Of a stretch of DNA of 64,000 nt, positions 31,501-44,400 are shown piece after piece (position 1 is the stretch's first letter; every line of letters begins with the position of its first letter). The stretch covers positions 54,734 to 118,733 of the forward strand of contig DF237212.1 of NCBI GenBank assembly GCA_000708835.1, given 5' to 3'. Both the position numbers and the translations under genes were made by a program. The notes beneath the pieces are model-generated. The model was not told where the DNA came from. It did no database searches and saw only the letters and a program-made list of their open reading frames with translations. The DNA is from Klebsormidium nitens. Its lineage: Eukaryota > Plantae > Klebsormidiophyceae.

Positions 31501-33650
31501 CCGCTGCCGCTAGTTTGTGTAGAGGTCCGCTGTAGCCGCGCGGAAGAGGGTGGCCCCGCGCTCATTTCAGAAGAGAGAGCAGCCCTGGCGCACACAAGAG
31601 CCAGGCTTCAGTCGAAAGCTGAAACCCTGGCAACGAGAGTATCACCATGCCCATGTTCGCCAACTGGACGCATCTTTTGGCTTGAAATCGACAGATGTTT
31701 TTGCCTTCACAGGAAGCTTTCATGTACCACCTCAGAGACGTTCGCCAATTGTATGTCGTACTAGATTGGGAGCAGAGAGACAAACGTACTGTGCCAGGCT
31801 GCGACGAAAGCACAAACGTGTAACCTCCGCCAGTTAAAACGCTGAACCATACTCACCTGAGACTGCTGGCACGAGTGGGCGGCAAACCAGTACCGCCTTT
31901 ACTCCCCTGGGCTGGTCCGGCCGCATCGCCGCCCTGCAAATCGCTTTCTCCGCCTTCAGACTCCCTCCCAGCTTGACTACCCGTGTCACCGACAAGCAGC
32001 TCGTCATACAGATCAACCACCCGCGTCTTCCCTTTTTTCCCTTGCTTAGAAGCTGCCCGGTCGAGGGCTGCAGCTCGGCTCGAGTTGACCGCCCCTCTCT
32101 CGGCACTGCCCTCTGAAACGAGGGGCGCACTCGCTGCTTCCGTGAACAGCGGGGGGTTGGCTTTTTCACTGGGGCCTCGGATTTGTGAGCCAGTCGTTTT
32201 ACTGGGTTCAGCTGCAATCGAGGGGCGCCTGGACTCTGGTCTATCCTGAGACACCCCGTCCTTAAAGGAGAAGCCCTCGAGAGTCACAGCCCCCACGGTG
32301 GAAGCCCCCCTCTCTCTGAGTCCACTCTTCCCCCTCTCCTCATCGCCAGCAGTCACATGTGACTCAGGGGGGGTGACAGCACCATCAGCAGGTGGACTCT
32401 GGACCGAGGGCTCACTTTTTTCCTCGGCGTTCTTTGATGGCGCTTCCGGAAGTTCTCCGTGGCTAAAAGCCATCTGTGGACAGGGGTCCTCCCCGACAAT
32501 CACCTCAGAGGAGCTGGTGGCTTTTTTCTGCTGCTGCCAAAATGGTGGGCTCACAGGTTTGCCACCCCCGGAGCTCTCAAGTTTTGTGTTTGACAAAGGC
32601 CACCCGACCAGTGACTCGGCGGGCGCCTCTGTTTCTTTCCCCTTCTCCAGACAAAGGGAGCACACTCGGGCTGGGATGCCACCACTGGTAAACTGCACGC
32701 CAAATGCGACGCCTTAATCAGCATTGGAAAGAGTTGCTTGATGTGGAAAGGTCTACCACTTCCGTTCCAGCCCCAAGCATCGCACCAGGGGCCAGCCTGT
32801 ATTGGCCCCAACCTAGAACAGGGGATGCCTGTATATTGTTGCTTGAGCCACACATGGGTTTACCCCTCCATTCCGGCAGCGTCCATGCTCTTGCAGGACA
32901 GCTCAATGCCCCCTTGAATCGTCATAAGCATGGGCAAAGGCAGGGTATGAATTTATATCCGTACCCCATCCTTTCTCGCCCGACTGTCAAAGCCCGCTGA
33001 TCTATCCTGTCACTGGCATTTAATGCATGTACTATGTGGCTCTGAAACCCACCTGAGCTGTACCCGGATCGAGCGGCATGAAATGAGAAGCACACTTCAG
33101 ACAGAAGATGTTTCCACAGGAGAAGCAGTGATACCTGCAGACACGAGTTGAGTAGCTTGGGCATAAGTGAAGGAAGGACACTCTATACAACTAACAGTAC
33201 AGATGGTGATCAAGGAGCTCCTTCTGATCAGGCCTGCATTTCTCCTCACTTCGATTAGGTAAGCCAAGGTGATGGGAGTGTGAAACAGACTTGACGTCAA
33301 CACTGAATCCGGAGAAAAAAGAGAAGCGTCTTCATATGGTGGTGGCATCTCTCGACAAACGTTCACCATTTGTAAATGCCCCCCAGTAGGACATGCTGCA
33401 AAGCATCATGGTTGGGCAATCTGTAAATTGTTCTGCATAGTGCAAACCCTAATCTGCAGATACTGAGGACCCAAGCGTAGACTCCTTGGAAGACGATAAG
33501 GCGAAGGAGAGTCTTCGAGTTGGCTCCTTACTTGCTGCTTGAATCAGCAAGACTGACTCCACAGCCAGGATTGACGCATCTGTGCACCGCCTCCAGAGGC
33601 ATCCAGTGCTTCTTGGTGATGTCTTCAGTCGTCAACTGTCCCCCTACCAT
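28590..33650 (-). CDS. FYVE-like zinc finger + low-complexity linker + coiled coil + C-terminal PH-like domain protein
   Basis: N-terminal exons: MVGGQLTTEDITKKHWMPLEAVHRCVNPGCGVSLADSSSK|YHCFSCGNIFCLKCASHFMPLDP|..GGIPARVCSLCLE. C-terminal exons: DWLQRFLVLEDDTLSYYFRAT|D.RPQGTIPLSQVVEAGPL...FYVATCHGLQLQCASANKFK|VELWLTTISEVMCQIKPSD*. Middle exons (30.2-31.4 kb) are not fully resolved. Confidence 0.72.
28883..28975. repeat. About 93-nt intronic fold-back with a perfect 17-bp stem and an inner 6-bp stem
   Basis: GCACGGATCTGGTCGGT (28889-28905) pairs with ACCGACCAGATCCGTGC (28954-28970); GGCAGT/ACTGCC closes a 10-nt loop. Confidence 0.85.
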
Positions 33651-34443
33651 CTTCTCTGAACCCCGATGCGGAGTGGAGTGTGAGTGTGACCATCCTACCG
33701 CTGGTACTTTCTGATGCGCTTCAAAGTTTTACTCCTTTGTGGCATTTGTCAACTTCACTTCTGATGAAAATCCTGTGCAGAATGCAGAATGCTTCTCCCA
33801 GATTGCCCTTCAATGCAGACGCAAGAAGCTAACCAGAAGTACGTCCACAGAATGCGGTTGTGGCCCTGGAAACCTTGCAATGGTTGCATGATGGACCCTG
33901 CATTATTGGTGGTATCAATTGGTGCGACCATTGCAGGCTGTCTCAGGTGTCTGCCAACCGTGTCTTTGAAAGGAACTGACGAAGTTGTCTGCTGATGTCA
34001 AATTGCTGGGGGAGATGCACAAAGAGCAAAAAGGGTGTCAATAGGCCGAAGCTGCCAGCTTGCGGCGGAGTGGCGGCTTTCAAAATATAAAGGCTGGCAA
34101 ACACCCTGGTTCCGCTATTCCGCCGTTCCCCTGCGGCTCGAGCAGCGACCGAGCCTTGACACTCACTCACTCTCTTCATGATGTGCCAGCGTTCAGCTGA
34201 ACTCAGCTGAACTGCGTAGGATCGTACGCAGGCAGATGACGCGTGACATGGCCGCAGCTGGCACTGGTGCGGGTGAAAGTAGGTAGTAGGTAGCAAGTGT
34301 AGGAAGTGGTGCTGGCAGGGCGCGCAGTGCTGTCGAGCTTGGGCCATGGATTAGACCCATTGTCATTGCTTATTGTAGGGTGGTGCGGGCTGGGCGGTGG
34401 TTGTCAGCCAATAAACTGGCCAAGGGAGCGCTGATGCCGGAGT

Positions 34444-37400
34444 ATGACAGCTGCCACAATGTCGGAAGAAGGGGTACGTCTGATGAATGTTCAGCATCCA
34501 AAAGTAAGTCTTATTGTCCAGGTTCGACAGCGTGCATTCATTAACAGGCCTTTACAATTTATTCTTTGGAAGCTGACAGTTCAGAGTTTTGCTTCCGCCC
34601 TGACACTGTTTTCTACGACCATTGTTGCAGTATTGAACTTTCATCGCTGCAGTTTTTTAAGTGTCCATTTCTATCTGGTCACTACACATCCCCCAGCTGC
34701 ATGTGGCAGCTGGTTGTCCAAGCCAACCAGAACCTTCCGTAAATCAGCTCACGCTGTTTTCAGAGTATCTGATGCTCCCTGCAGTGCTGACACTTGCCGA
34801 CACCCTAGCATTTAGTCTGTCAGGAGTTGTGGATAAAAGAAGCCAGCGATGAGCCGTCATCCTTTCCATTTCATGACTCCTTCTGTTGCTTGCAAGGGCT
34901 AGAAGCTGCCAGCTTTTCTATTCCAAGAAAGAGATACTTTGAGATACTTTAGCACCCTCGAACTCTTTTCAATGTTAGCAGTGCAGCCTGAATGGCATTC
35001 GCCAACAAAGGGACAGGTGCTTCATGGCCAAGCCCTTTCTTGTTGCAGTCTCCCCGCGGTTACGAGAACGCCGTAAAACGACTTCCAACGCAGGGAGCTT
35101 ACAAGACTGAGGTAGGAATTTATTGGATATTTGTGATTGTGCAAGCTTATAATGGTTGCATCTGGACAAGATAGCTGCTACTTGGAACGAAGTCCAAAGC
35201 CCGGAAGCTGGCCTCTGCATATCACTACTCGTAAAATGGATAGGCGTAAACTTGCGTGTTGAGTTCTAACAGGAGAACTAATAAGTTTCTCGTCTGCGAA
35301 CAGCTCTGCAACAAGTTTGAAACTGCAGGCGTATGTCCTTACGGGGGTGCTTGCCAGGTGAGCTGCTTGTAGGCTCTGCGCAGAGCATATGCAGTCAGTA
35401 CTTAAGCTGCTGTCACATCAGTGAGTCATGAAACGCAGGCTTATGCTTTCCTACTTGAAGGTGGCATCTCTGGCTATTCCATGTCCACCTCCTTTGTGTT
35501 TGCCCCTATGCTGCCATAAGAAAGTCTCAGCGGTTGAACTCACGAGCGTGTGCGGCAACCGTCACTTTTGTGCCTGGTGACTGAACCCTCAGTTTTGAAC
35601 ATGCAGTTTGCCCATGGACTGGAAGAGCTGCGGCCAGTAATCAGGTGTGTTGACCGTCCAAGCCTGAAAAAACCATAGATTCTCCAGGTGTCATATCTTC
35701 TGTTGCACATACTCCCTCATTGCACATCTCAACCTTTCCAGTAGAATAAAGTATAGAGCAGAGTATACAAGGAGTTGATGGAATTCTCTGAGCACCTTGA
35801 GATTGGTGATTGAGGCATGTACTTCTTGTTTCTAGTTGTTCAATAGTTACAAATCGTGGATGAGTCCCAACTCAGAGTGCAACACTTTGCCTCTTTTACA
35901 GGCCTCCGTCCTTCAAGACCAAGCAGTGCGAGTGGCTTGCATCCGGTCGGGAGTGTCCTTACGGCAGGCGCTGTCACTTCAAACATCCCACCGATGAAAC
36001 CCTGCCCCTTACCAGCCTGCACGTCAGGGCCAAGAGTTGGGACGCCGCCGTGCCAGTGTCCCCCAAAAGTTTCAGAGAACTGGGCACCTCAAACCTAGGC
36101 AAAAAGGTGCTCTTCTCATGGGAGAGCCCGGAGAGTGACCGCTTTGCATCAGGTTTGCCGACGTTCAACAAATCGTTGAGCAGCGAGCGGGTCAAGTTTG
36201 TCAACAACTGGCCGTCTTCGGCGCTCCCTTCCGATGGGCAACTCGCAGCCCTGCAAGCGGGGAGACGCCTGTCTGCTGGGGCAATTCCTCTGCCGCAGGC
36301 CTTGCACCACGACCCGCCGTCGCCTGCTGACCTGTCGATCGGATTGAGCAGGCTGTCCCTTAGCAGCCGTGCGGACCCCTTGGCACGCCTCTTGATTCCT
36401 CAGCCGATGCCAGGATCGCCGTCCGACCACAGTGACAGCGAGCATAGTTCCCCGTCCAAAAGTCAGGGCTTTGCACCACATTTGGGAGTAGAGCTTAGTA
36501 GCCCTAGGAAAGGTCCCCACTCGCCCCGCACCACACTAACCTGTAAAACAAGCTTCGAAGGGAGCCCCCGAGCATTTGACGCACACCGCCCGCTGCATTT
36601 AGAGCCATCCTCGCCCCTCCACCATTCCCCGTATGGCCGGGGACCCCTCTCATTCACAGAGGGGCTCAGCCCTACCAGGGCGCAAGCAGAACTGACGGAC
36701 GCTTTCAAGAGGGTGAAAGCATCAGGGAGTTCGTACAGCGAACGCTTGGCACAACTGCAGTTCATTTTGGACGCTCTTACTAGGCGGGGTCTGCTGGGGA
36801 CAGAGCTGCATGTACGGGTGAGTCGAGTTTGGCGGCTCTTGATTCTTGAGATGCGGGTAATGCCTTCCCCTTCCATCACTGGTGGCAACCAGTTTTGGTC
36901 ATCCGCATACCTCTGGCTTCAATCTTGCTTACCATCGCTTTTTGAACCACAGATAGGGAAGTTACTTCAGTCACAATTGCCTGAAGCCGATACAAGAGCC
37001 TTGAGCTGATACTCCTTGGCCTCCTGCAACATGCGACTTGTATTTTTCAAGCTCTCTTTAATCCTCTCTTGCCGCTTCCTGTGTAGGTACTTGAAACCAT
37101 GGCCAGAGACGCTGTCCAGCATGCGGACTGGAACTGGTTCTCACAGGTATTGTATCTTACTCACGGTGATTGAGGCATGACCGCAATTGTGACCGAGAGG
37201 ATTCCAGTTATGCGACATTGGCAATGTCTTTCGGTGCTCCTTTTTCGCTCGTCACAACCGGCAACAGCAAGCTGGCCCCAACATGTCCTCTGTCTTGTTT
37301 GCACAGGTTTGGAGTGCAAATTTCTCTGTCAGTGTGTTGCGTCAAGCCTTCTTATATTGAGCATGAGCGATGCGCGGTCCCTTATTGCAGTGCCGAGCGC

Positions 37401-38261
37401 AGCTTACTAGGCTGCCAGCGGAGGTGGTGTGGAGCCGTGACGAGTTCACGGCCTACCTCATCCTTCAGTCTTACCTAAGTGGCGCCCTGCCAGTGGAAAA
37501 TCTGGCGGCTCTGGAGGACAGGTAGGCTGCACGGACTGGGTAGATGCTGTCTGAAGTCAAGGACTACTGCCTGCATATACGCTCTTTCTAATCTTCTGTT
37601 AGGGGCATCATCAGTATGTGGCGAGGCCGAGAGCTATGCTAGCAACGATTGCAGTCTGCTCTGATTTGTCAGGACTTTGACACGTTGCTTTTGAGTCGGT
37701 TGACTTCGCGGTCAGCGCCAGCCTCGTTGTGAGATTAAGGAAGTGCCTTCGTCAATGATAATTGCTACCTCTGCAGGTATCCTGTGGAAAGCCAGGGACC
37801 CATCGTGCATGCACTGGCAGTGTGCAAGGCAGTCGCGGCTGGAGACTTTCTTAGCTTCTTCAGTCTCCGAGAAGCAGCGCCAAATTTGAACGGCATCATC
37901 ATGGGTGAGCTGTCTCCTGTTTCTTCCAGTCTCACAGTGTATGATTGAGGTGCCGTTCAGGTTCTAGCACAGCTTACATCTTGAAGTGGTATCTTATTCT
38001 CTGTTTGTGCCAGAGTCGGGACTCTCATCTGCGCTCTGGAGCTCGAGGGCTGGTTTATCATAGGGGTTCGTTCTTACGAAGCTTGATTGCTCTGCAGATG
38101 CTGTGGCCAATCAAATGAGGAACGTGGGGATAAGAGACATTCTGGCCGCCGCCGCAGAGCACGAGCTCGCAGTCGACCAAATGGCGGACCTCTTGGGCTT
38201 CCGAGGTAACACCGCTGCCTTTGCTGACTGGATGGAAGCAGAAGGGTTTGCTGCCCGCTGA
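34444..38261 (+). CDS. Tandem CCCH (TTP/TIS11-type) zinc-finger protein fused to a C-terminal SAC3/GANP/THP3-like domain
   Basis: Exons 34444-34503, 35049-35111, 35304-35357, 35607-35644, 35902-36817, then four more. Fingers: [26 protein letters not shown]-x18-CEWLASGRECPYGRRCHFKH. C-terminus: VRVLETMARDAVQHADWNWFSQCRAQL...DEFTAYLIL...HALAVCKAVAAGDFLSFFSLREAAPNLNGIIMD...QMR...LLGF. Confidence 0.85.
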
Positions 38262-39695
38262 GGCTCCCGCTCGGTGCTTTCATGGTGTAATGAATCGCGA
38301 ATATCAGGGAAATTAACGCCAGATTAGAGATATTTATGGTCTACATCTAGTAGATCAGCGTCACAGATCAGGTCGATAAGTTAATATTGAGTGGGAGAAT
38401 TGTATTGTCAACGAGTTCTCTTAGAGTCCTTAGAATATTGCTAGCTGTGCCTCAGGTGTGCCCAATTCAATTCAGCTATAATCAGCTTATAGTAATCAAG
38501 GAACTGCAGTTTTGAGCTCGACTTGTCTGTAGCAAGAAGGTATATGTGCTTGCCTGTCTAAAGTAGCTGTCAAGAGGTACATACAATTGACGGTGCGCAT
38601 GTTGTATTTGATCTATGGTGGTCAAAAACGTTAGTTTAGAAGCATAGCCTTGTCCATAGCCGTTTTTGCTGTCCATCCTACTTGGATTGATGGTGCTCGA
38701 TTCCTAATTCATTGCGCACATGGCCGATCATCAATTGGATTCTCGTTTGTGGACATGCTGGGTAAGCTTAGTCGAAGATGAGCAATGCTCACCTGTTGAT
38801 ATGAACCCTGCGATATCGGATGCATGATTGTGAAGGCCCACCGTCGACTTCAAACAAGGATATTGCAAGACATATTGTTAATTTTATTAAGTTGTATACT
38901 CAACCATTCATCCACTTGGTTTTTAGCTTTATGTACATACAATCGAATGTCCAGGCCTTCCTTGATAACGCTGGAGTAGCTGGGCGGGGCTATCGCAAGG
39001 ATCGTCTGCGTCAAAAACTGCTTGCTCGTTATCAATCATTGTCAGACTCATCGCACAAAAGTCGGAAACATGCATGCAAGCACTATAGACCAGTAGCTGC
39101 AACTGAGTAAATATGATGGTAGAGAGTCTTTCATGAACCTGCTTCGCATTTTGGGATCCACCTGCGCGTCCAATTGTGATGATTGAGCGCAAATTGATCC
39201 GTTTCAAGACCCGATTCATGGGGGCCAGGTCGAACTTAAAGGGACGGCATAAGACTTGCTGGCATGCAGATATGCGGAATCATTGAAATGGAGGGGTATC
39301 TCTTGTGTAACAATATGTGATGACTTAGTGTCTTCAAAACATGTGCCCGACATATAGGTAGGGTAGTATGCGGGTGGGTGCTATTGTGCAGCATGTGATC
39401 TTTGGGCCTTAGTTGTGATTCCGCTTCTATCCAACATTCAGGAAACACTCAATTACCAGCAAACAAGTCTCTTAGAGAGATAGAGACTACTGGCTTCGAC
39501 AAATGCACATGAACCTACTGAAGGCCTACATTGGACAGAGGCTGCGCTATGATGGTCTGAATAGAGCAATGCAATCGCAAAATTGACTTACATATCTGGC
39601 CCAGTGACCCAGGCACTTCTTTATCAGTATTGTGCAAAGGCGTCCCAGAAGATAAGGCAACTCAAAAAATAACAACGCAGCAGTCTCCGCATCTC

Positions 39696-40857
39696 TTATA
39701 CAAGCACCGGAAGCTTCTCCTTCAGGAGTTTGTCCAACTTAGCTTTAGTAATGGCCCCCTCATTGTGAGTTAAGAGCTTTCCGGATTCGAAAATAAGGAC
39801 GGTTGGGAGGCCGTATACTTTGTACTTCTCGGTGGTCTTCGGATTTGCCTCCACGTCTACCTTCACCACCTTCAGCTTCCCATCATATGTCTGCACAAAA
39901 CGTGTGTACAATTGAACCAGAACTGACCAGCCACATACTAGACATCACAGTCCAACCTCCGTCTCACTTTCAAGCGTCACAGCCCACCCTTCGTCTCCAG
40001 TACTCTTAAATTGATGTATTTGTATTGTGGCCACAGGGGTACAGATGGGCGAAAATCTGATGACTTGACGACCTGAAGCTTGAAGCTTGCCAAAGGGTTA
40101 CAGGCTTCAACAAGTCGATGAGCGCAACTGCTGCCGGGCTGCTGACCTTCAAGATCTGCTGGCAGCATCAAATACCCAAGCAACACCACAAACCCTAATG
40201 CTGAGCGGCCTGACGAAGACCACGGATGCCTTTGGGAGAAATGTGCGGCTCAATCGGATTCTTTCTTTGTGACCACATCGACATTTGCGCGAAGCAGAAA
40301 GCTCAGCAAGATGCATGCAGCAGAGCGCAAACAAGTGTGGGGCGTCAACCTTCCTAGTATTCCAATTCTAACAAACTCCTCCAGAGTAGTTCAACAGCCG
40401 TTTAACCTAGTGTCAGCATTGTACTCACCTCTGCTGCCCAAGTCATGAGTGGTGCTACTAGCTTGCAAGGCCCACACCAGCTGGCATGGAAATCTACCAG
40501 CACCGGAAGCGGCGACTCAACTACTTCACTTTCAAAGTCAGCATCCCCAATGTCGGCAACCCCTCCCGCGCAAACTATTGAAGGGGAGCAGCTTCTCTGT
40601 CCAGATGGGCACGGCCCGCTCTTGTGCGTCCACCTGAGAGGTAAGCCCGAAGCAAAGGAACTCCTCAGGCGCAGCCCAGATGATGTGTCTGCTGATGCGA
40701 GAGCTCTTTTTAATGAAGGAGCTGCGGACTTCTTCAGAGCTGGCAGCCCTGCAACACAGGATTGCCGGCTGTCTGCGGAAGGGCGGCTCACACCCTGAGC
40801 GTATGCGCACGGACGAAAACACAGCGACTGATGCGCGGCGAGAGCACTGGAGCCCAT
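39696..40857 (-). CDS. TRX-x: Plastid thioredoxin x, two exons, with transit peptide
   Basis: WCGPC active site in [19 protein letters not shown]; x-type signatures KVYGLPT and EGAITKAKL; Ser/Ala-rich N-terminus. Confidence 0.9.
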
Positions 40858-41408: not shown

Positions 41409-44400
41409 ATGGCTAGCAACGAGCATGCTCAACTGTTGGACAATCTGGACATGCTCGTGGCAGACGAGAAGAAGATAGTAAGCTGTCTCTCTTTCAAAAG
41501 CGCCTGAGGAACAAGCTGGTGCAGCAATGCCTGGCAATTTCAATGGGTTTCAAGAAGCTGCACTCACAGAAGTAGCCTCTGGACTTCTGGTATCTCGTAA
41601 TGCTGCCGGGGTTTCAATTTGGAGCTCGTGGAGTCTGTTCGTTTGGAACACTGAGAGCGCCAGTGGTTGTCGCATAGATCTCGAAGCACCGGCGCTCTCA
41701 TAGTTCCGAGCAGATCTCAAAGCACCGACGCTCTCATAGTTCCGAGTAGAAGTCAAAGCACCGGCCCTCTCATAGTTCTGAGATTTATGACTGTGCAGAG
41801 GTTGAGCGTCAGATTGATAAGTTTAGCATTCCCAGCTCACTTTCGCAGGAAAACTTTTGGACGGAGTGCTTCACAACATTCTCATGTCTTTAAGCATATC
41901 TTTTCCTGAATTCTCAGCGCCTTTGCTCATTTTGTCCAGGTGTCCTTTAAATGGCTCAGTCGAGCGTTCTCCCTCCCTTCAAATACTGCCAAAGAGTGAG
42001 CACATTCTGCTCAAGACCTCTTGAAAGGCTTGACTCCTTGCTACATATTATATATTTGAGCCACAATTGAAACATGCTATGTTGCACGAAGTGAATGCAT
42101 GAAGAGATTGGGATCCCCCACTGTACATGGAATATGCTTCTTATTTTGCCATTCAGCTCAACACATGATGCAGAATTGAGAAGCTCTTACGAGCAGCTTC
42201 CTCTGATCTTTGCATTTCTTTGCAGGGTCCTGAAGGCATATGCTGAGAAGAAGAAGGACGCAGTGAAGGTAGTGTACCTGGTGTCAGGTTGGACCCGCAA
42301 TGACTCACGTGCATTCTCCCTCCAGTTGGTCGGGCCAAGTAGCCTCGAAGGTAAGCCCCAGTCGGTCTCGTCAGCTCAACCTGGTTATGCAGGTGTGTCT
42401 GCAGAGGCAGTCGCGGGGGTGTCTGCCTGCAGAGTTTCTTGGAAGTATAAAAAACTTTCAGGAACTTTTCGGACTTTCTTCTCAAATGTTTGTTGTAGTG
42501 AAGCAGATTCTGTGGGAACAAAAGTGTAGTGCTGCGAACCTGCGGATTGTGGCTATGCACTGAACTGTGCGGGTGTGCAGGGGCCTTGGCAAACTTGGAC
42601 GAGGCATCGTCCCATGTCTACAGCGTACAGCCGTCCATTCCCAAGGACCCAGCTGCTCTTTGGACCCCGGACTTTATCCAGGCAGAGGAGCTGTTCAACC
42701 GGCCGCCAGAGGAGGATAACTGTTTGCGGAATAACAGGTAAGGACGAGGACAAGGTCACTGATGAACAGCTCAAGCTCATCTCATGAACCAGCGATGTCT
42801 CAATGGTGTTATCAGAGGTCTTTTGGAGTTATACTGTGGCGTTCTGGTGCCCGTCTTTGTGATGCAACTTTCTCGAGAGTTAAGTACAGGAGGTCATTTG
42901 CTTCAATCTATCCTCTCCTCTGCAGCTTGAGTGGTGTGGTGTTGACGAACGTCAAATGCAACCCGGGAGGCAGGCGGAGGGCTGCTCCGCCCCCCTCGAA
43001 TGCTGGCGAGGGAGCGCTCAAGCCAGTCGTTCCAAAGGGCACAGCCGAGAAACCTGCGACGCCCCCCGCCAGTCCCGTTGTCAAAACCGAGGAGGTTGAA
43101 GCCGCAGCGCCCAAAGCTGCGAAGCTGGGGGCAGCCCCGAAGGCAGGGCCGGCAACTGGGGCAAAGGGAACGAAATCGAAAGCGGCACCGGCAAAAGGGG
43201 GCCTGGCGAACCTGTGGGGCAAGGCGCCCCCCAAAACAAAGGCCGCTGCTGCAAAAGTAGAGGAGGTGGGGGGCGTCAGGGGGGGTGATGCTGAGGCCCG
43301 CATTCGAGTGATGGAAGAGGCGGAGGGGGGGCAAAGCAGTGGGGAAGAGGAGGAAGAGTTGGCCCCCCGGGGGCGGGCAGGGCGGCGGAGACGGGTGGCG
43401 CTTGACGAGGAGGAAGAAGAGGATGACGGGGGCTCTGAGGGGGCTAATGGCGGTGACGTTGCGATGGAAGATGCGGAGGCGGCCGACCAGGGGGCTGACG
43501 TCGTCATGCGTGAAAGCGAGGAGCCCGAAGCGGGGGCGGCGGAAGAAGCGGAGGCGATGGATGCAGTTGATTTGAATGAGACGACACCTCCCGAGGAACA
43601 CTTGGAAGTGAAGCCGCCAGTTGCTGGGGTCGGGGGTCGAGGGGCTGCTGCGAAACGAAGAAAGATTGCGAGGAGCACTTTTGATGAGAGGGGAAGAGAA
43701 GGTGCGGCCTCCCAACTGGCTTCGATTCGCCTATGTTGCTTCAAGTCAAAGCTGCATCTGTAACTGTCATGCTGTTCTCGTTGGAGGCCGAACTGACGTT
43801 CGTGGATTCCAGATGCTCTGGCTGTTCTGGTCAAATTCAGCGGACGGTTTCCGTGAGTTCTTAGGGGGTTCAAGGAGGCAACCGCTGATACTTCGAGGCA
43901 ACATTTTCGCTTTCAAAGAGTGCATGGCGTTAGCATTCTATTTGCATAGTCATCCTTTGAATGAGCATTATAGTTGACAAGTTCCTCGCAATCCAGTCTT
44001 GAAATCAAAAGCTTATCGTCGACCTTGTGGCAGTCGTCGAAATGGTTTGGGAGGACGAGCTGGGAGGCGAAGGAGCGGAAGCAGTTGCTGACGTTGCCCC
44101 AGAGCCCATCAAAGCGGAACCAAGGTAGGTCTGCACGAGAGTGCTGTTTCTTTGACTGGAATCGGCATGCGCGAGCAGAGCCAAACCTGCGAATCGGGTT
44201 TGACGCTGCATGGTCTGCGTTGGTCGGAGTATCTTTGCTGAGTCTCACAGGCGATCATGGCACGGTCACCCAATCACAGAAGATTCACCCGACGTTGATG
44301 TATGTGCGTCATTCGCTCCCATTAAGAACGTCCACACGTAAAGGATTTCGAGTCTTTTCAAACCCCTTAAGGACACTAGTTGGCGCGATCTTATGATGCA

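Follow-up and report, generated by a model that had tools for sequence, protein, structure and literature searches.

The gene at positions 34444-38261 (+ strand) of the analysed window, i.e., the whole stretch of 64,000 nucleotides taken from a Klebsormidium nitens contig, encodes a three-part protein: a tandem CCCH zinc finger (residues 38-100), which makes the N-terminal half, to judge from its sequence, one of the TTP/ZFP36 type; a Ser/Pro-rich linker of ~215 residues; and a SAC3 PCI domain (residues 316-537), whose sequence and modelled fold assign the C-terminal half to the LENG8/THP3 type. The fusion is a lineage-specific variant built of known parts, found in one algal genus so far.

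The gene comprises nine exons, and their codons reproduce the public 537-aa protein without a single difference. The summed exon length (1614 nt) equals 537 codons plus the stop, and the codons lying within a single exon translate to the public protein in 535/535 cases, an agreement far beyond chance. The exon table given below is based on tblastn with the public protein and on the junctions of RNA contigs; sequence searches were performed with single exons or with the public record, which is identical to the exon translations.

34444-38261, + strand: gene, from the start ATG at 34444 to the stop at 38259-38261; 9 nt before the ATG there is an in-frame stop
34444..34503, + strand: exon 1, residues 1-20, 100% identical to the public protein by tblastn
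35049..35111, + strand: exon 2, residues 21-41, closing with YKTE (35100-35111), the lead-in of finger 1
35304..35357, + strand: exon 3, residues 42-59, finger 1 from C43 to Q59 (35307-35357)
35607..35644, + strand: exon 4, residues 60-71 and 2 further nt; finger 1 is completed by FAH (35607-35615), then follows the inter-finger linker GLEELRPVI
35902..36817, + strand: exon 5, residues 72-377; one open frame with finger 2, then the Ser/Pro-rich linker, then the SAC3-like start
35927..35986, + strand: zinc finger 2, C81-H100, CEWLASGRECPYGRRCHFKH
36632..36640, + strand: Y316-G-R318, with R318 in the R column of the family YLR motif
36632..38258, + strand: predicted LENG8/THP3-type SAC3 PCI domain, residues 316-537 (the last 222), exons 5-9
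37087..37146, + strand: exon 6, residues 378-397, VLETMARDAVQHADWNWFSQ; diverged counterpart of the family VYETHAR helix
37391..37521, + strand: exon 7, residues 398-441, containing the EFTAY motif
37777..37904, + strand: exon 8, residues 441-484, containing HALAV...FF.L...APN
38098..38261, + strand: exon 9, residues 484-537, with the TGA stop at 38259-38261

All the introns (8/8) are of the GT..AG type and each junction is supported by RNA contigs from four studies, the one between exon 1 and exon 2 (34503/35049) having been found in 4 runs. The contigs X3 (1946 nt) and X8 (1756 nt) extend from exon 5 through exon 9 into the 3' UTR, which is colinear with the genome to at least 38500. Since the exons of the fingers and the 3' UTR are joined within single contigs, the fusion is carried by one mRNA. 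It is virtually certain that the gene is real, expressed and nuclear, with the identity and anatomy described here. That two adjoining genes were misassembled, or merged in a chimeric gene model, is extremely unlikely: finger 2 lies in one open exon with the first three SAC3 helices, spliced RNA contigs from the four studies bridge all the exons, and related genomes, assembled independently, show this arrangement too; this explanation is refuted by the contigs together with those assemblies. The first-pass annotation had placed finger 2 and the start of the SAC3-like region in exon 5, and the exon does contain, in one open frame, the former (35927-35986) together with 62 residues from the beginning of the latter (36632-36817); it had also asked whether cDNAs end before the SAC3 exons, and the spliced contigs continue through these exons to the 3' UTR. 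In some low-depth RNA contigs introns are retained.

Both fingers conform to the C-x8-C-x5-C-x3-H pattern, being C43-x8-C52-x5-C58-x3-H62 and C81-x8-C90-x5-C96-x3-H100, respectively, and the gap from H62 to C81 is exactly 18 residues (GLEELRPVIRPPSFKTKQ), so that TIS11d and TTP align without gaps. Pfam zf-CCCH recognises two stretches (E 3.7e-14), and the comparison of the finger region with the PDB retrieved 9y10, TIS11d (1rgo) and TTP (1m9o) at E-values from 6e-22 to 2e-20. The conserved Tyr and Phe of TTP-type fingers stack on RNA bases; the aromatic residues Y54/F60 (finger 1) and Y92/F98 (finger 2) match the Tyr and Phe positions in the alignment with TIS11d (1rgo). The pattern, the spacer and the stacking-type residues reported in the first-pass annotation are therefore all present, and its attribution of the fingers to the TTP family agrees with the matches of about 1e-20 to TIS11d/TTP. 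Its further claim of TTP-type lead-ins stands for finger 1, where AYKTEL matches the (R/K)YKTEL consensus, and only in part for finger 2, whose lead-in SFKTKQ is non-canonical and retains just the x-aromatic-K-T of that consensus. The SFKTK of finger 2 is invariant across three Klebsormidium-type orthologs.

The two fingers, the 18-residue spacer, the YKTEL lead-in and the Tyr/Phe residues are shared with TTP, TIS11d/ZFP36L2 and the plant C3H14/C3H15 (CDM1) proteins, whereas the SFKTKQ lead-in sets the K. nitens protein apart from the TTP family. The identity with land-plant C3H14/15 is ~60% over the fingers; however, in the land-plant proteins the fingers are located at the extreme C-terminus, with no SAC3 domain after them, whereas in K. 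nitens they are N-terminal and are followed by the linker and the PCI domain.

Concerning the C-terminal half, a word-based search with this region retrieved only the protein itself, and a large HMMER search was therefore needed. The latter, performed with the SAC3 part, yielded 579 matches at E up to 1e-3; Pfam SAC3_GANP was present in 10/10 of the best matches scanned, and the named plant matches were annotated as 'SAC3 family protein A'. In phmmer, the domain matched the human LENG8 PCI domain with an E-value of 1.2e-14 (residues 350-530, about 30% identity). When scanned alone against Pfam PF03399, it scored 27.2 bits versus a cut-off of 27 (E 3.2e-6), over profile positions 163-276 only; SAC3_GANP was not found at E up to 1 in the scan of the whole 537-aa protein, nor in the exon by exon scan, which detected the fingers and in which the exons were too short for a SAC3_GANP match. 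A feature-based atlas search with the whole protein gave no usable match. The AF2 model of the SAC3 part (pLDDT 87.7) is all-helical, without beta strands, and its top structural match is LENG8 in TREX-2.1 (9dlr_A; Z 19.0, rmsd 3.5 A, 201 residues), with the superposition covering LENG8 575-781, that is, the helical part and the winged-helix helices; Thp3 (7ewf) comes next, followed by Rpn12/PSMD8 and Sac3/GANP. The E-value to human LENG8 and the Z-score both agree with the SAC3/LENG8-like C-terminus previously proposed.

The idea that the N-terminal third of the domain might be missing was rejected, as re-alignment from residue 290 disclosed the YxR/VRP segment. Like LENG8, Thp3 and plant SAC3A, the protein has a C-terminal PCI domain with the YxR loop, the VRP arginine, EFxAY, HALAV and FF.L..APN. 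The SAC3 PCI fold, as modelled, is shared also with the TREX-2 scaffold GANP/Sac3 (Z 13-14 to 3t5v, 9dlp and 9upb); unlike GANP/Sac3, the K. nitens protein carries no FG, CID or acetyltransferase-like regions, and the phmmer search gave not a single GANP or Sac3 chain at E 10 or better. By sequence, the domain belongs to the LENG8/THP3 branch and not to GANP/Sac3. In GANP/Xmas-2, an RNA-recognition-type domain precedes the SAC3 domain; an RNA-binding module joined to SAC3 is thus loosely precedented.

Within its family, the K. nitens PCI domain is, by sequence comparison, a fast-evolved outlier. It keeps 31 of the 50 near-invariant columns (>=90% conserved), each of 51 homologs keeping >=88% of them; the remaining 19/50 residues (38%) are changed. 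In the tree, it lies on a very long, unplaced branch, with a terminal length of 5.63 versus a median of 0.6 (about 9x). The family motifs GTC..LEK.YLR, KSIRQDLTVQ and VYETHAR are not found as such: of the first, Y.R alone remains; the second reads QFILDALTRR (IRQDLTVQ being replaced by ILDALTRR); and the third reads VLETMAR, with Leu in place of the Tyr equivalent to LENG8 Y624, a residue reported to contact DDX39B D66 (PMC12216326). According to the alignment, four LENG8 residues that are reported to make key contacts with PCID2 (PMC12216326), namely R703, A743, F748 and Y756, correspond to C457, D497, A503 and Q511. Furthermore, the protein terminates about 19 residues short of LENG8, directly after the last winged-helix helix, and the family terminal 'LDxKxS' winged-helix hairpin is absent. 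Relative to LENG8/Thp3/SAC3A, the differences thus include the IRQDLTVQ and YETHAR motifs, several reported PCID2/DDX39B contacts and the lack of the terminal hairpin.

Other positions are retained, so that the residue-level comparison with the partner contacts of LENG8 is mixed, some being kept and some replaced. R318 is aligned to LENG8 R563, with Y316 two residues ahead, and LENG8 Y561-x-R563 is the 'YxR' trigger loop (PMC12216326); in the orthologs, both Y316 and R318 are retained, with variable flanking residues. R331 is the invariant VRP arginine of the family. L430, L435 and A436 occupy the positions of LENG8 I679, L683 and A684, and F465 that of Y711, all four LENG8 residues lying on the PCID2 interface (PMC12216326).

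The related genomes L001 and L002/L003 exhibit the same exon structure and stop position and both domains; the gene is conserved within the genus and under purifying selection, the dN/dS values of the SAC3 part being 0.23 and 0.085. A CCCH finger was found in none of the best 150 of the 579 SAC3-domain relatives, and of the 45 finger relatives from other genera, none has PF03399 among its precomputed Pfam domains; among the matches listed, the fusion was not found in other lineages. The first-pass annotation had considered that the architecture might be already common and annotated. The latter is true, since the public K. nitens record is named 'CCCH zinc finger-containing SAC3/GANP... family protein', a name that already spells out the architecture; the former is not, given the 150 and 45 relatives without the fusion. 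Its statement that no characterised protein combines both parts is in line with the literature search, which retrieved no paper on this zinc-finger/SAC3 architecture.

As to the possible role of the protein, LENG8-PCID2 and Thp3-Csn12 have been described as connectors: UAP56/Sub2 is bound by their PCI core, and their specificity comes from the N-terminal tails (PMC13322074, PMC12363940); the LENG8 complex with PCID2 and SEM1/DSS1 is referred to as TREX-2.1 or REX. Work of 2025-2026 describes LENG8/Thp3-PCID2 complexes as switching nuclear mRNPs to retention or decay instead of export, with specificity provided by disordered tails that bind early splicing factors. LENG8/Thp3 have a long disordered N-terminus binding splicing factors or PAXT, whereas the K. 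nitens protein has a TTP-type finger pair instead. In the hypothesis we favour, these fingers would bind UAUUUAU-like AU-rich single-stranded RNA (UUAUUUAUU-type), as other TTP-family fingers do, the protein would be anchored through its PCI domain to a PCID2/THP1/CSN12-type PCI partner and DSS1, and the retained YxR loop would engage the UAP56/DDX39B helicase. ARE-bearing RNAs would in this way be handed over to nuclear mRNP remodelling, retention or decay, and a direct RNA-reading module would replace the disordered specificity tail of LENG8/Thp3. This ARE-directed connector mechanism, taken as a whole, is proposed tentatively, as somewhat short of probable. The adaptor between AU-rich mRNAs and export or decay, as suggested at first pass, is still plausible but weakened, because the domain has lost many invariant residues, including PCID2/DDX39B contacts, and the terminal hairpin. 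The broader proposal, i.e., that the protein is a LENG8-type decay/retention connector whose specificity derives from direct ARE reading by TTP fingers and not from splicing factors, in effect a natural tethering experiment, seems unlikely. If true, it would imply that streptophyte algae possess a sequence-specific nuclear ARE pathway coupling PCID2/DSS1/UAP56 remodelling to defined transcripts; we know of no such pathway described in any organism.

The same changes are compatible with a different history. The protein might be a TTP-like regulator of mRNA decay or translation, whose SAC3-derived helical domain has lost its pairing with PCID2/DSS1 or UAP56 and has been neofunctionalised into a lineage-specific interaction, dimerisation or regulatory module, without a TREX-2-like link. 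We regard this as possible, though doubtful. It is supported by the loss of the 19/50 near-invariant residues, among them the Tyr that contacts DDX39B and four positions reported to contact PCID2, by the missing winged-helix hairpin and by the very long, unplaced branch; the persisting purifying selection fits a new but constrained function, and the conserved short linker motifs could recruit decay factors. On the other hand, the YxR, the VRP arginine and the PCID2 contacts of the helical domain (L430, L435, A436, F465) have been kept, the high-confidence model of the PCI fold superposes best on LENG8, and a partner could have co-evolved with the changed surface.

The domain, having kept the helical PCID2 interface but changed in the winged-helix groove and at the Y624 equivalent (PMC12216326), might also act as a competitor or decoy: it would bind a shared PCID2-type subunit without productive UAP56 engagement, because of the lost Tyr and the truncated winged helix, and the binding to ARE RNAs would locally block TREX-2-type export. 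LENG8 itself has been proposed as a dominant negative towards TREX-2 (PMC12363940). However, the changed winged-helix contacts are those reported as the primary assembly interface (PMC12216326), and this scenario appears very improbable.

Should the connector reading be correct, the exchange of the tail for a module that binds RNA sequence-specifically would demonstrate that the PCI core is open to re-targeting, and the protein would offer a simple system for asking what this core does on a defined RNA. Through its strong divergence, the domain is in effect a test, by natural mutation, of the LENG8 residues that can be dispensed with. All this concerns a narrow case, i.e., one algal genus so far, known from sequence and RNA contigs.

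The linker contains one further element:

36329..36364, + strand: conserved linker motif DLSIGLSRLSLS, residues 215-226

The linker motif GLSRLSLS may be reminiscent of the motif with which TTP, at its C-terminus, binds CNOT1, a likeness on which no claim rests. Residues 215-226 are one of several islands of the linker that are invariant across the three Klebsormidium-type orthologs.

A split gene on the + strand was seen in the three-frame translation of positions 34300-38400, and a word-based protein search with its long open exon as query retrieved P0001, a public 537-aa protein named 'CCCH zinc finger-containing SAC3/GANP/Nin1/mts3/eIF-3 p25 family protein [Klebsormidium nitens]'; the fusion architecture is already labelled in the public record, and the protein is uncharacterised. 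P0001 matched the window in nine pieces at 100% identity (the search queries throughout being single exons or P0001 itself).

Exons of the fusion gene (tblastn of P0001)
34444-34503, +, exon 1
35049-35111, +, exon 2
35304-35357, +, exon 3
35607-35644, +, exon 4
35902-36817, +, exon 5
37087-37146, +, exon 6
37391-37521, +, exon 7
37777-37904, +, exon 8
38098-38261, +, exon 9

The summed exon length is 1614 nt, every intron has GT..AG borders, and the codons contained in single exons (535/535) match P0001 in translation; since the nine exons translate to P0001, the window is DNA of K. nitens and the interval 34444-38261 proposed by the first-pass annotation coincides exactly with the CDS limits.

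The fusion is carried by a single mRNA. Across 34300-38500, Logan contigs from four runs, each belonging to a different study, show all eight junctions at depth 95-430 and no others. Two long RNA contigs, X3 (1946 nt) and X8 (1756 nt), each connect the finger exons to exon 9 and on to the 3' UTR, and exon 5 by itself contains finger 2 together with 62 residues from the start of the SAC3-like domain; therefore, the cDNAs do not end before the SAC3 exons, and an artefact as the source of the fusion is essentially excluded. RNA contigs of low depth (3-12, versus 95-430 for the spliced ones), probably representing unspliced precursor or minor intron retention, pass through four introns.

Intron-retaining RNA contigs
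34474-35078, through intron 1
35328-35633, through intron 3
37117-37417, through intron 6
37495-37803, through intron 7

The N-terminal part is a TTP-type tandem finger, as had been claimed. Finger 1 (C43-H62, lead-in AYKTEL) and finger 2 (C81-H100, lead-in SFKTKQ) are both C-x8-C-x5-C-x3-H, are spaced by 18 residues and carry the aromatics Y54, F60, Y92 and F98. Pfam reports zf-CCCH in P0001 (E 3.7e-14), and the region aligns gap-free with solved structures (9y10, 6.4e-22; TIS11d 1rgo, 1.3e-20; TTP 1m9o, 1.8e-20). The closest full-length relatives, C3H14/C3H15 of land plants, share about 60% identity across the fingers; unlike P0001, they carry these at the extreme C-terminus, with no sequence beyond.

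In the C-terminal half, SAC3_GANP was matched neither in exon-by-exon Pfam scans nor in full-length P0001, even at E up to 1, and is reported only when P0001:305-537 is scanned alone (27.2 bits versus a cut-off of 27; profile positions 163-276 only); because of this, the precomputed Pfam list of P0001 contains zf-CCCH families only, despite the SAC3/GANP of the public name. With phmmer against PDB sequences, residues 350-530 matched the PCI domain of human LENG8 (E 1.2e-14), and the domain matched yeast Thp3 at E 0.61. An exhaustive HMMER search retrieved 579 proteins (E up to 1e-3), among which the top ones from outside the genus are 34-38% identical; SAC3_GANP was present in 10/10 top matches scanned, and the plant matches bearing names are 'SAC3 family protein A'. 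Among known structures, the AlphaFold2 model (51 homologs as input; pLDDT 87.7; eleven helices) is closest to LENG8 of the TREX-2.1 complex (VIA Z 19.0 over 201 residues, with rmsd 3.5 A and 30% identity; Foldseek E 1e-6), followed by Thp3, Rpn12/PSMD8 and Sac3/GANP. The LENG8 match, the SAC3_GANP-bearing relatives and the predicted fold thus identify a LENG8/THP3-type SAC3 PCI domain, in line with the earlier assignment.

This domain is strongly divergent. In a 52-sequence alignment, K. nitens keeps 31 of the 50 columns that are at least 90% conserved, versus at least 88% in every homolog; the family motifs KSIRQDLTVQ and VYETHAR read QFILDALTRR and VLETMAR, and the GTC..LEK block is absent. 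The terminal branch measures 5.63 versus a median of 0.6 in a maximum-likelihood tree that leaves the placement unresolved. P0001 ends at LENG8 residue 781 of 800, and therefore lacks the terminal 'LDxKxS' hairpin of homologs; the stop codon of the ortholog L003 lies at the same place. R318 aligns with LENG8 R563, the YxR trigger-loop arginine, with Y316 two residues ahead; orthologs keep this Tyr and Arg, with adjacent residues changed.

LENG8 residues and K. nitens counterparts (contacts as reported in PMC12216326; numbering anchored on five residue identities, R703, Y711, A743, F748 and Y756, in the phmmer alignment)
Y624, contact with DDX39B D66: L379
R703, contact with PCID2: C457
A743, contact with PCID2: D497
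F748, contact with PCID2: A503
Y756, contact with PCID2: Q511
I679, contact with PCID2, helical domain: L430
L683, contact with PCID2, helical domain: L435
A684, contact with PCID2, helical domain: A436
Y711, contact with PCID2: F465
R574, invariant VRP arginine: R331

Orthologous loci in related genomes were reached through two Logan-assembly ORF fragments with 81-88% and 68-69% identity to P0001: L001, which matches exons 1-8, and L002/L003, which together match exons 2-9. Where covered, these loci preserve the exon order and carry both fingers along with the SAC3-like exons. The fusion protein is under purifying selection.

dN/dS by region (dS is saturated for L003; a few HSP-edge codons may be intronic)
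Fingers: 0.18 versus L001, 0.014 versus L003
Linker: 0.10 versus L001, 0.11 versus L003
SAC3 part: 0.23 versus L001, 0.085 versus L003

The Ser/Pro-rich linker (35987-36631 in exon 5, with one island at 36329-36364) is not freely variable, being constrained in islands: SLHVRAKSWDA, NLGKKVLFSWE, FNKSLSSER, GLSRLSLS, IPQP and SPRKGPHSPRTTLT do not differ among three orthologs whose identity across the linker is otherwise only 63%. GLSRLSLS may resemble the CNOT1-binding motif at the TTP C-terminus.

The gene joins two known modules in a new combination specific to its lineage. Beyond this group, the searches turned up no protein that contains both: the CCCH pattern occurs in 0 of the best 150 of 579 SAC3-domain matches (HMMER library with one representative per 50%-identity cluster), PF03399 in 0/45 full-length word-search matches once P0001 and both ortholog fragments are set aside (precomputed Pfam), and the closest Atlas clusters each hold one family or the other. 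The first-pass annotation knew of no characterised protein of this kind, and the literature search likewise found no paper uniting CCCH fingers and a SAC3 domain.

LENG8-PCID2-SEM1 (TREX-2.1, 'REX') and yeast Thp3-Csn12 have been described as nuclear retention/decay connectors whose PCI core binds UAP56/Sub2 and whose N-terminal tails bind U1A, RRP1B and ZFC3H1 or, in yeast, Mud2-Bbp (PMC12363940, PMC13322074, PMC12216326, 10.64898/2026.04.13.716336); Arabidopsis SAC3A was recovered in a splicing-reporter screen (PMC6283158). The fusion described at first pass is confirmed, and its interpretation, which extends from the two domain assignments to a putative adaptor that would couple AU-rich mRNAs to export or decay, is partly supported. 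On the favoured but tentative reading, the fingers would recognise AU-rich RNA, and RNAs bound in this way would be coupled by the PCI domain to a PCID2/DSS1/UAP56-type machine. The replaced LENG8 contacts and the constraint on the SAC3 part speak for the main rival, still rather unlikely in our judgement, by which the PCI domain would have abandoned its ancestral partners and now serve a TTP-like regulator in a different, constrained function; action as a decoy appears quite improbable.

Two long open frames flank the fusion gene and have no obvious link to it: a 333-aa frame that is acidic and Ala/Glu/Lys-rich, and a 281-aa frame that is Ser/Pro/Gly-rich. A third open frame resembles the opening exon of a thioredoxin targeted to an organelle.

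Neighbouring open frames
42762-43763, +, long open frame
31853-32698, -, long open frame
40402-40857, -, 151-aa open frame with Ser/Ala-rich N-terminus and WCGPCK motif
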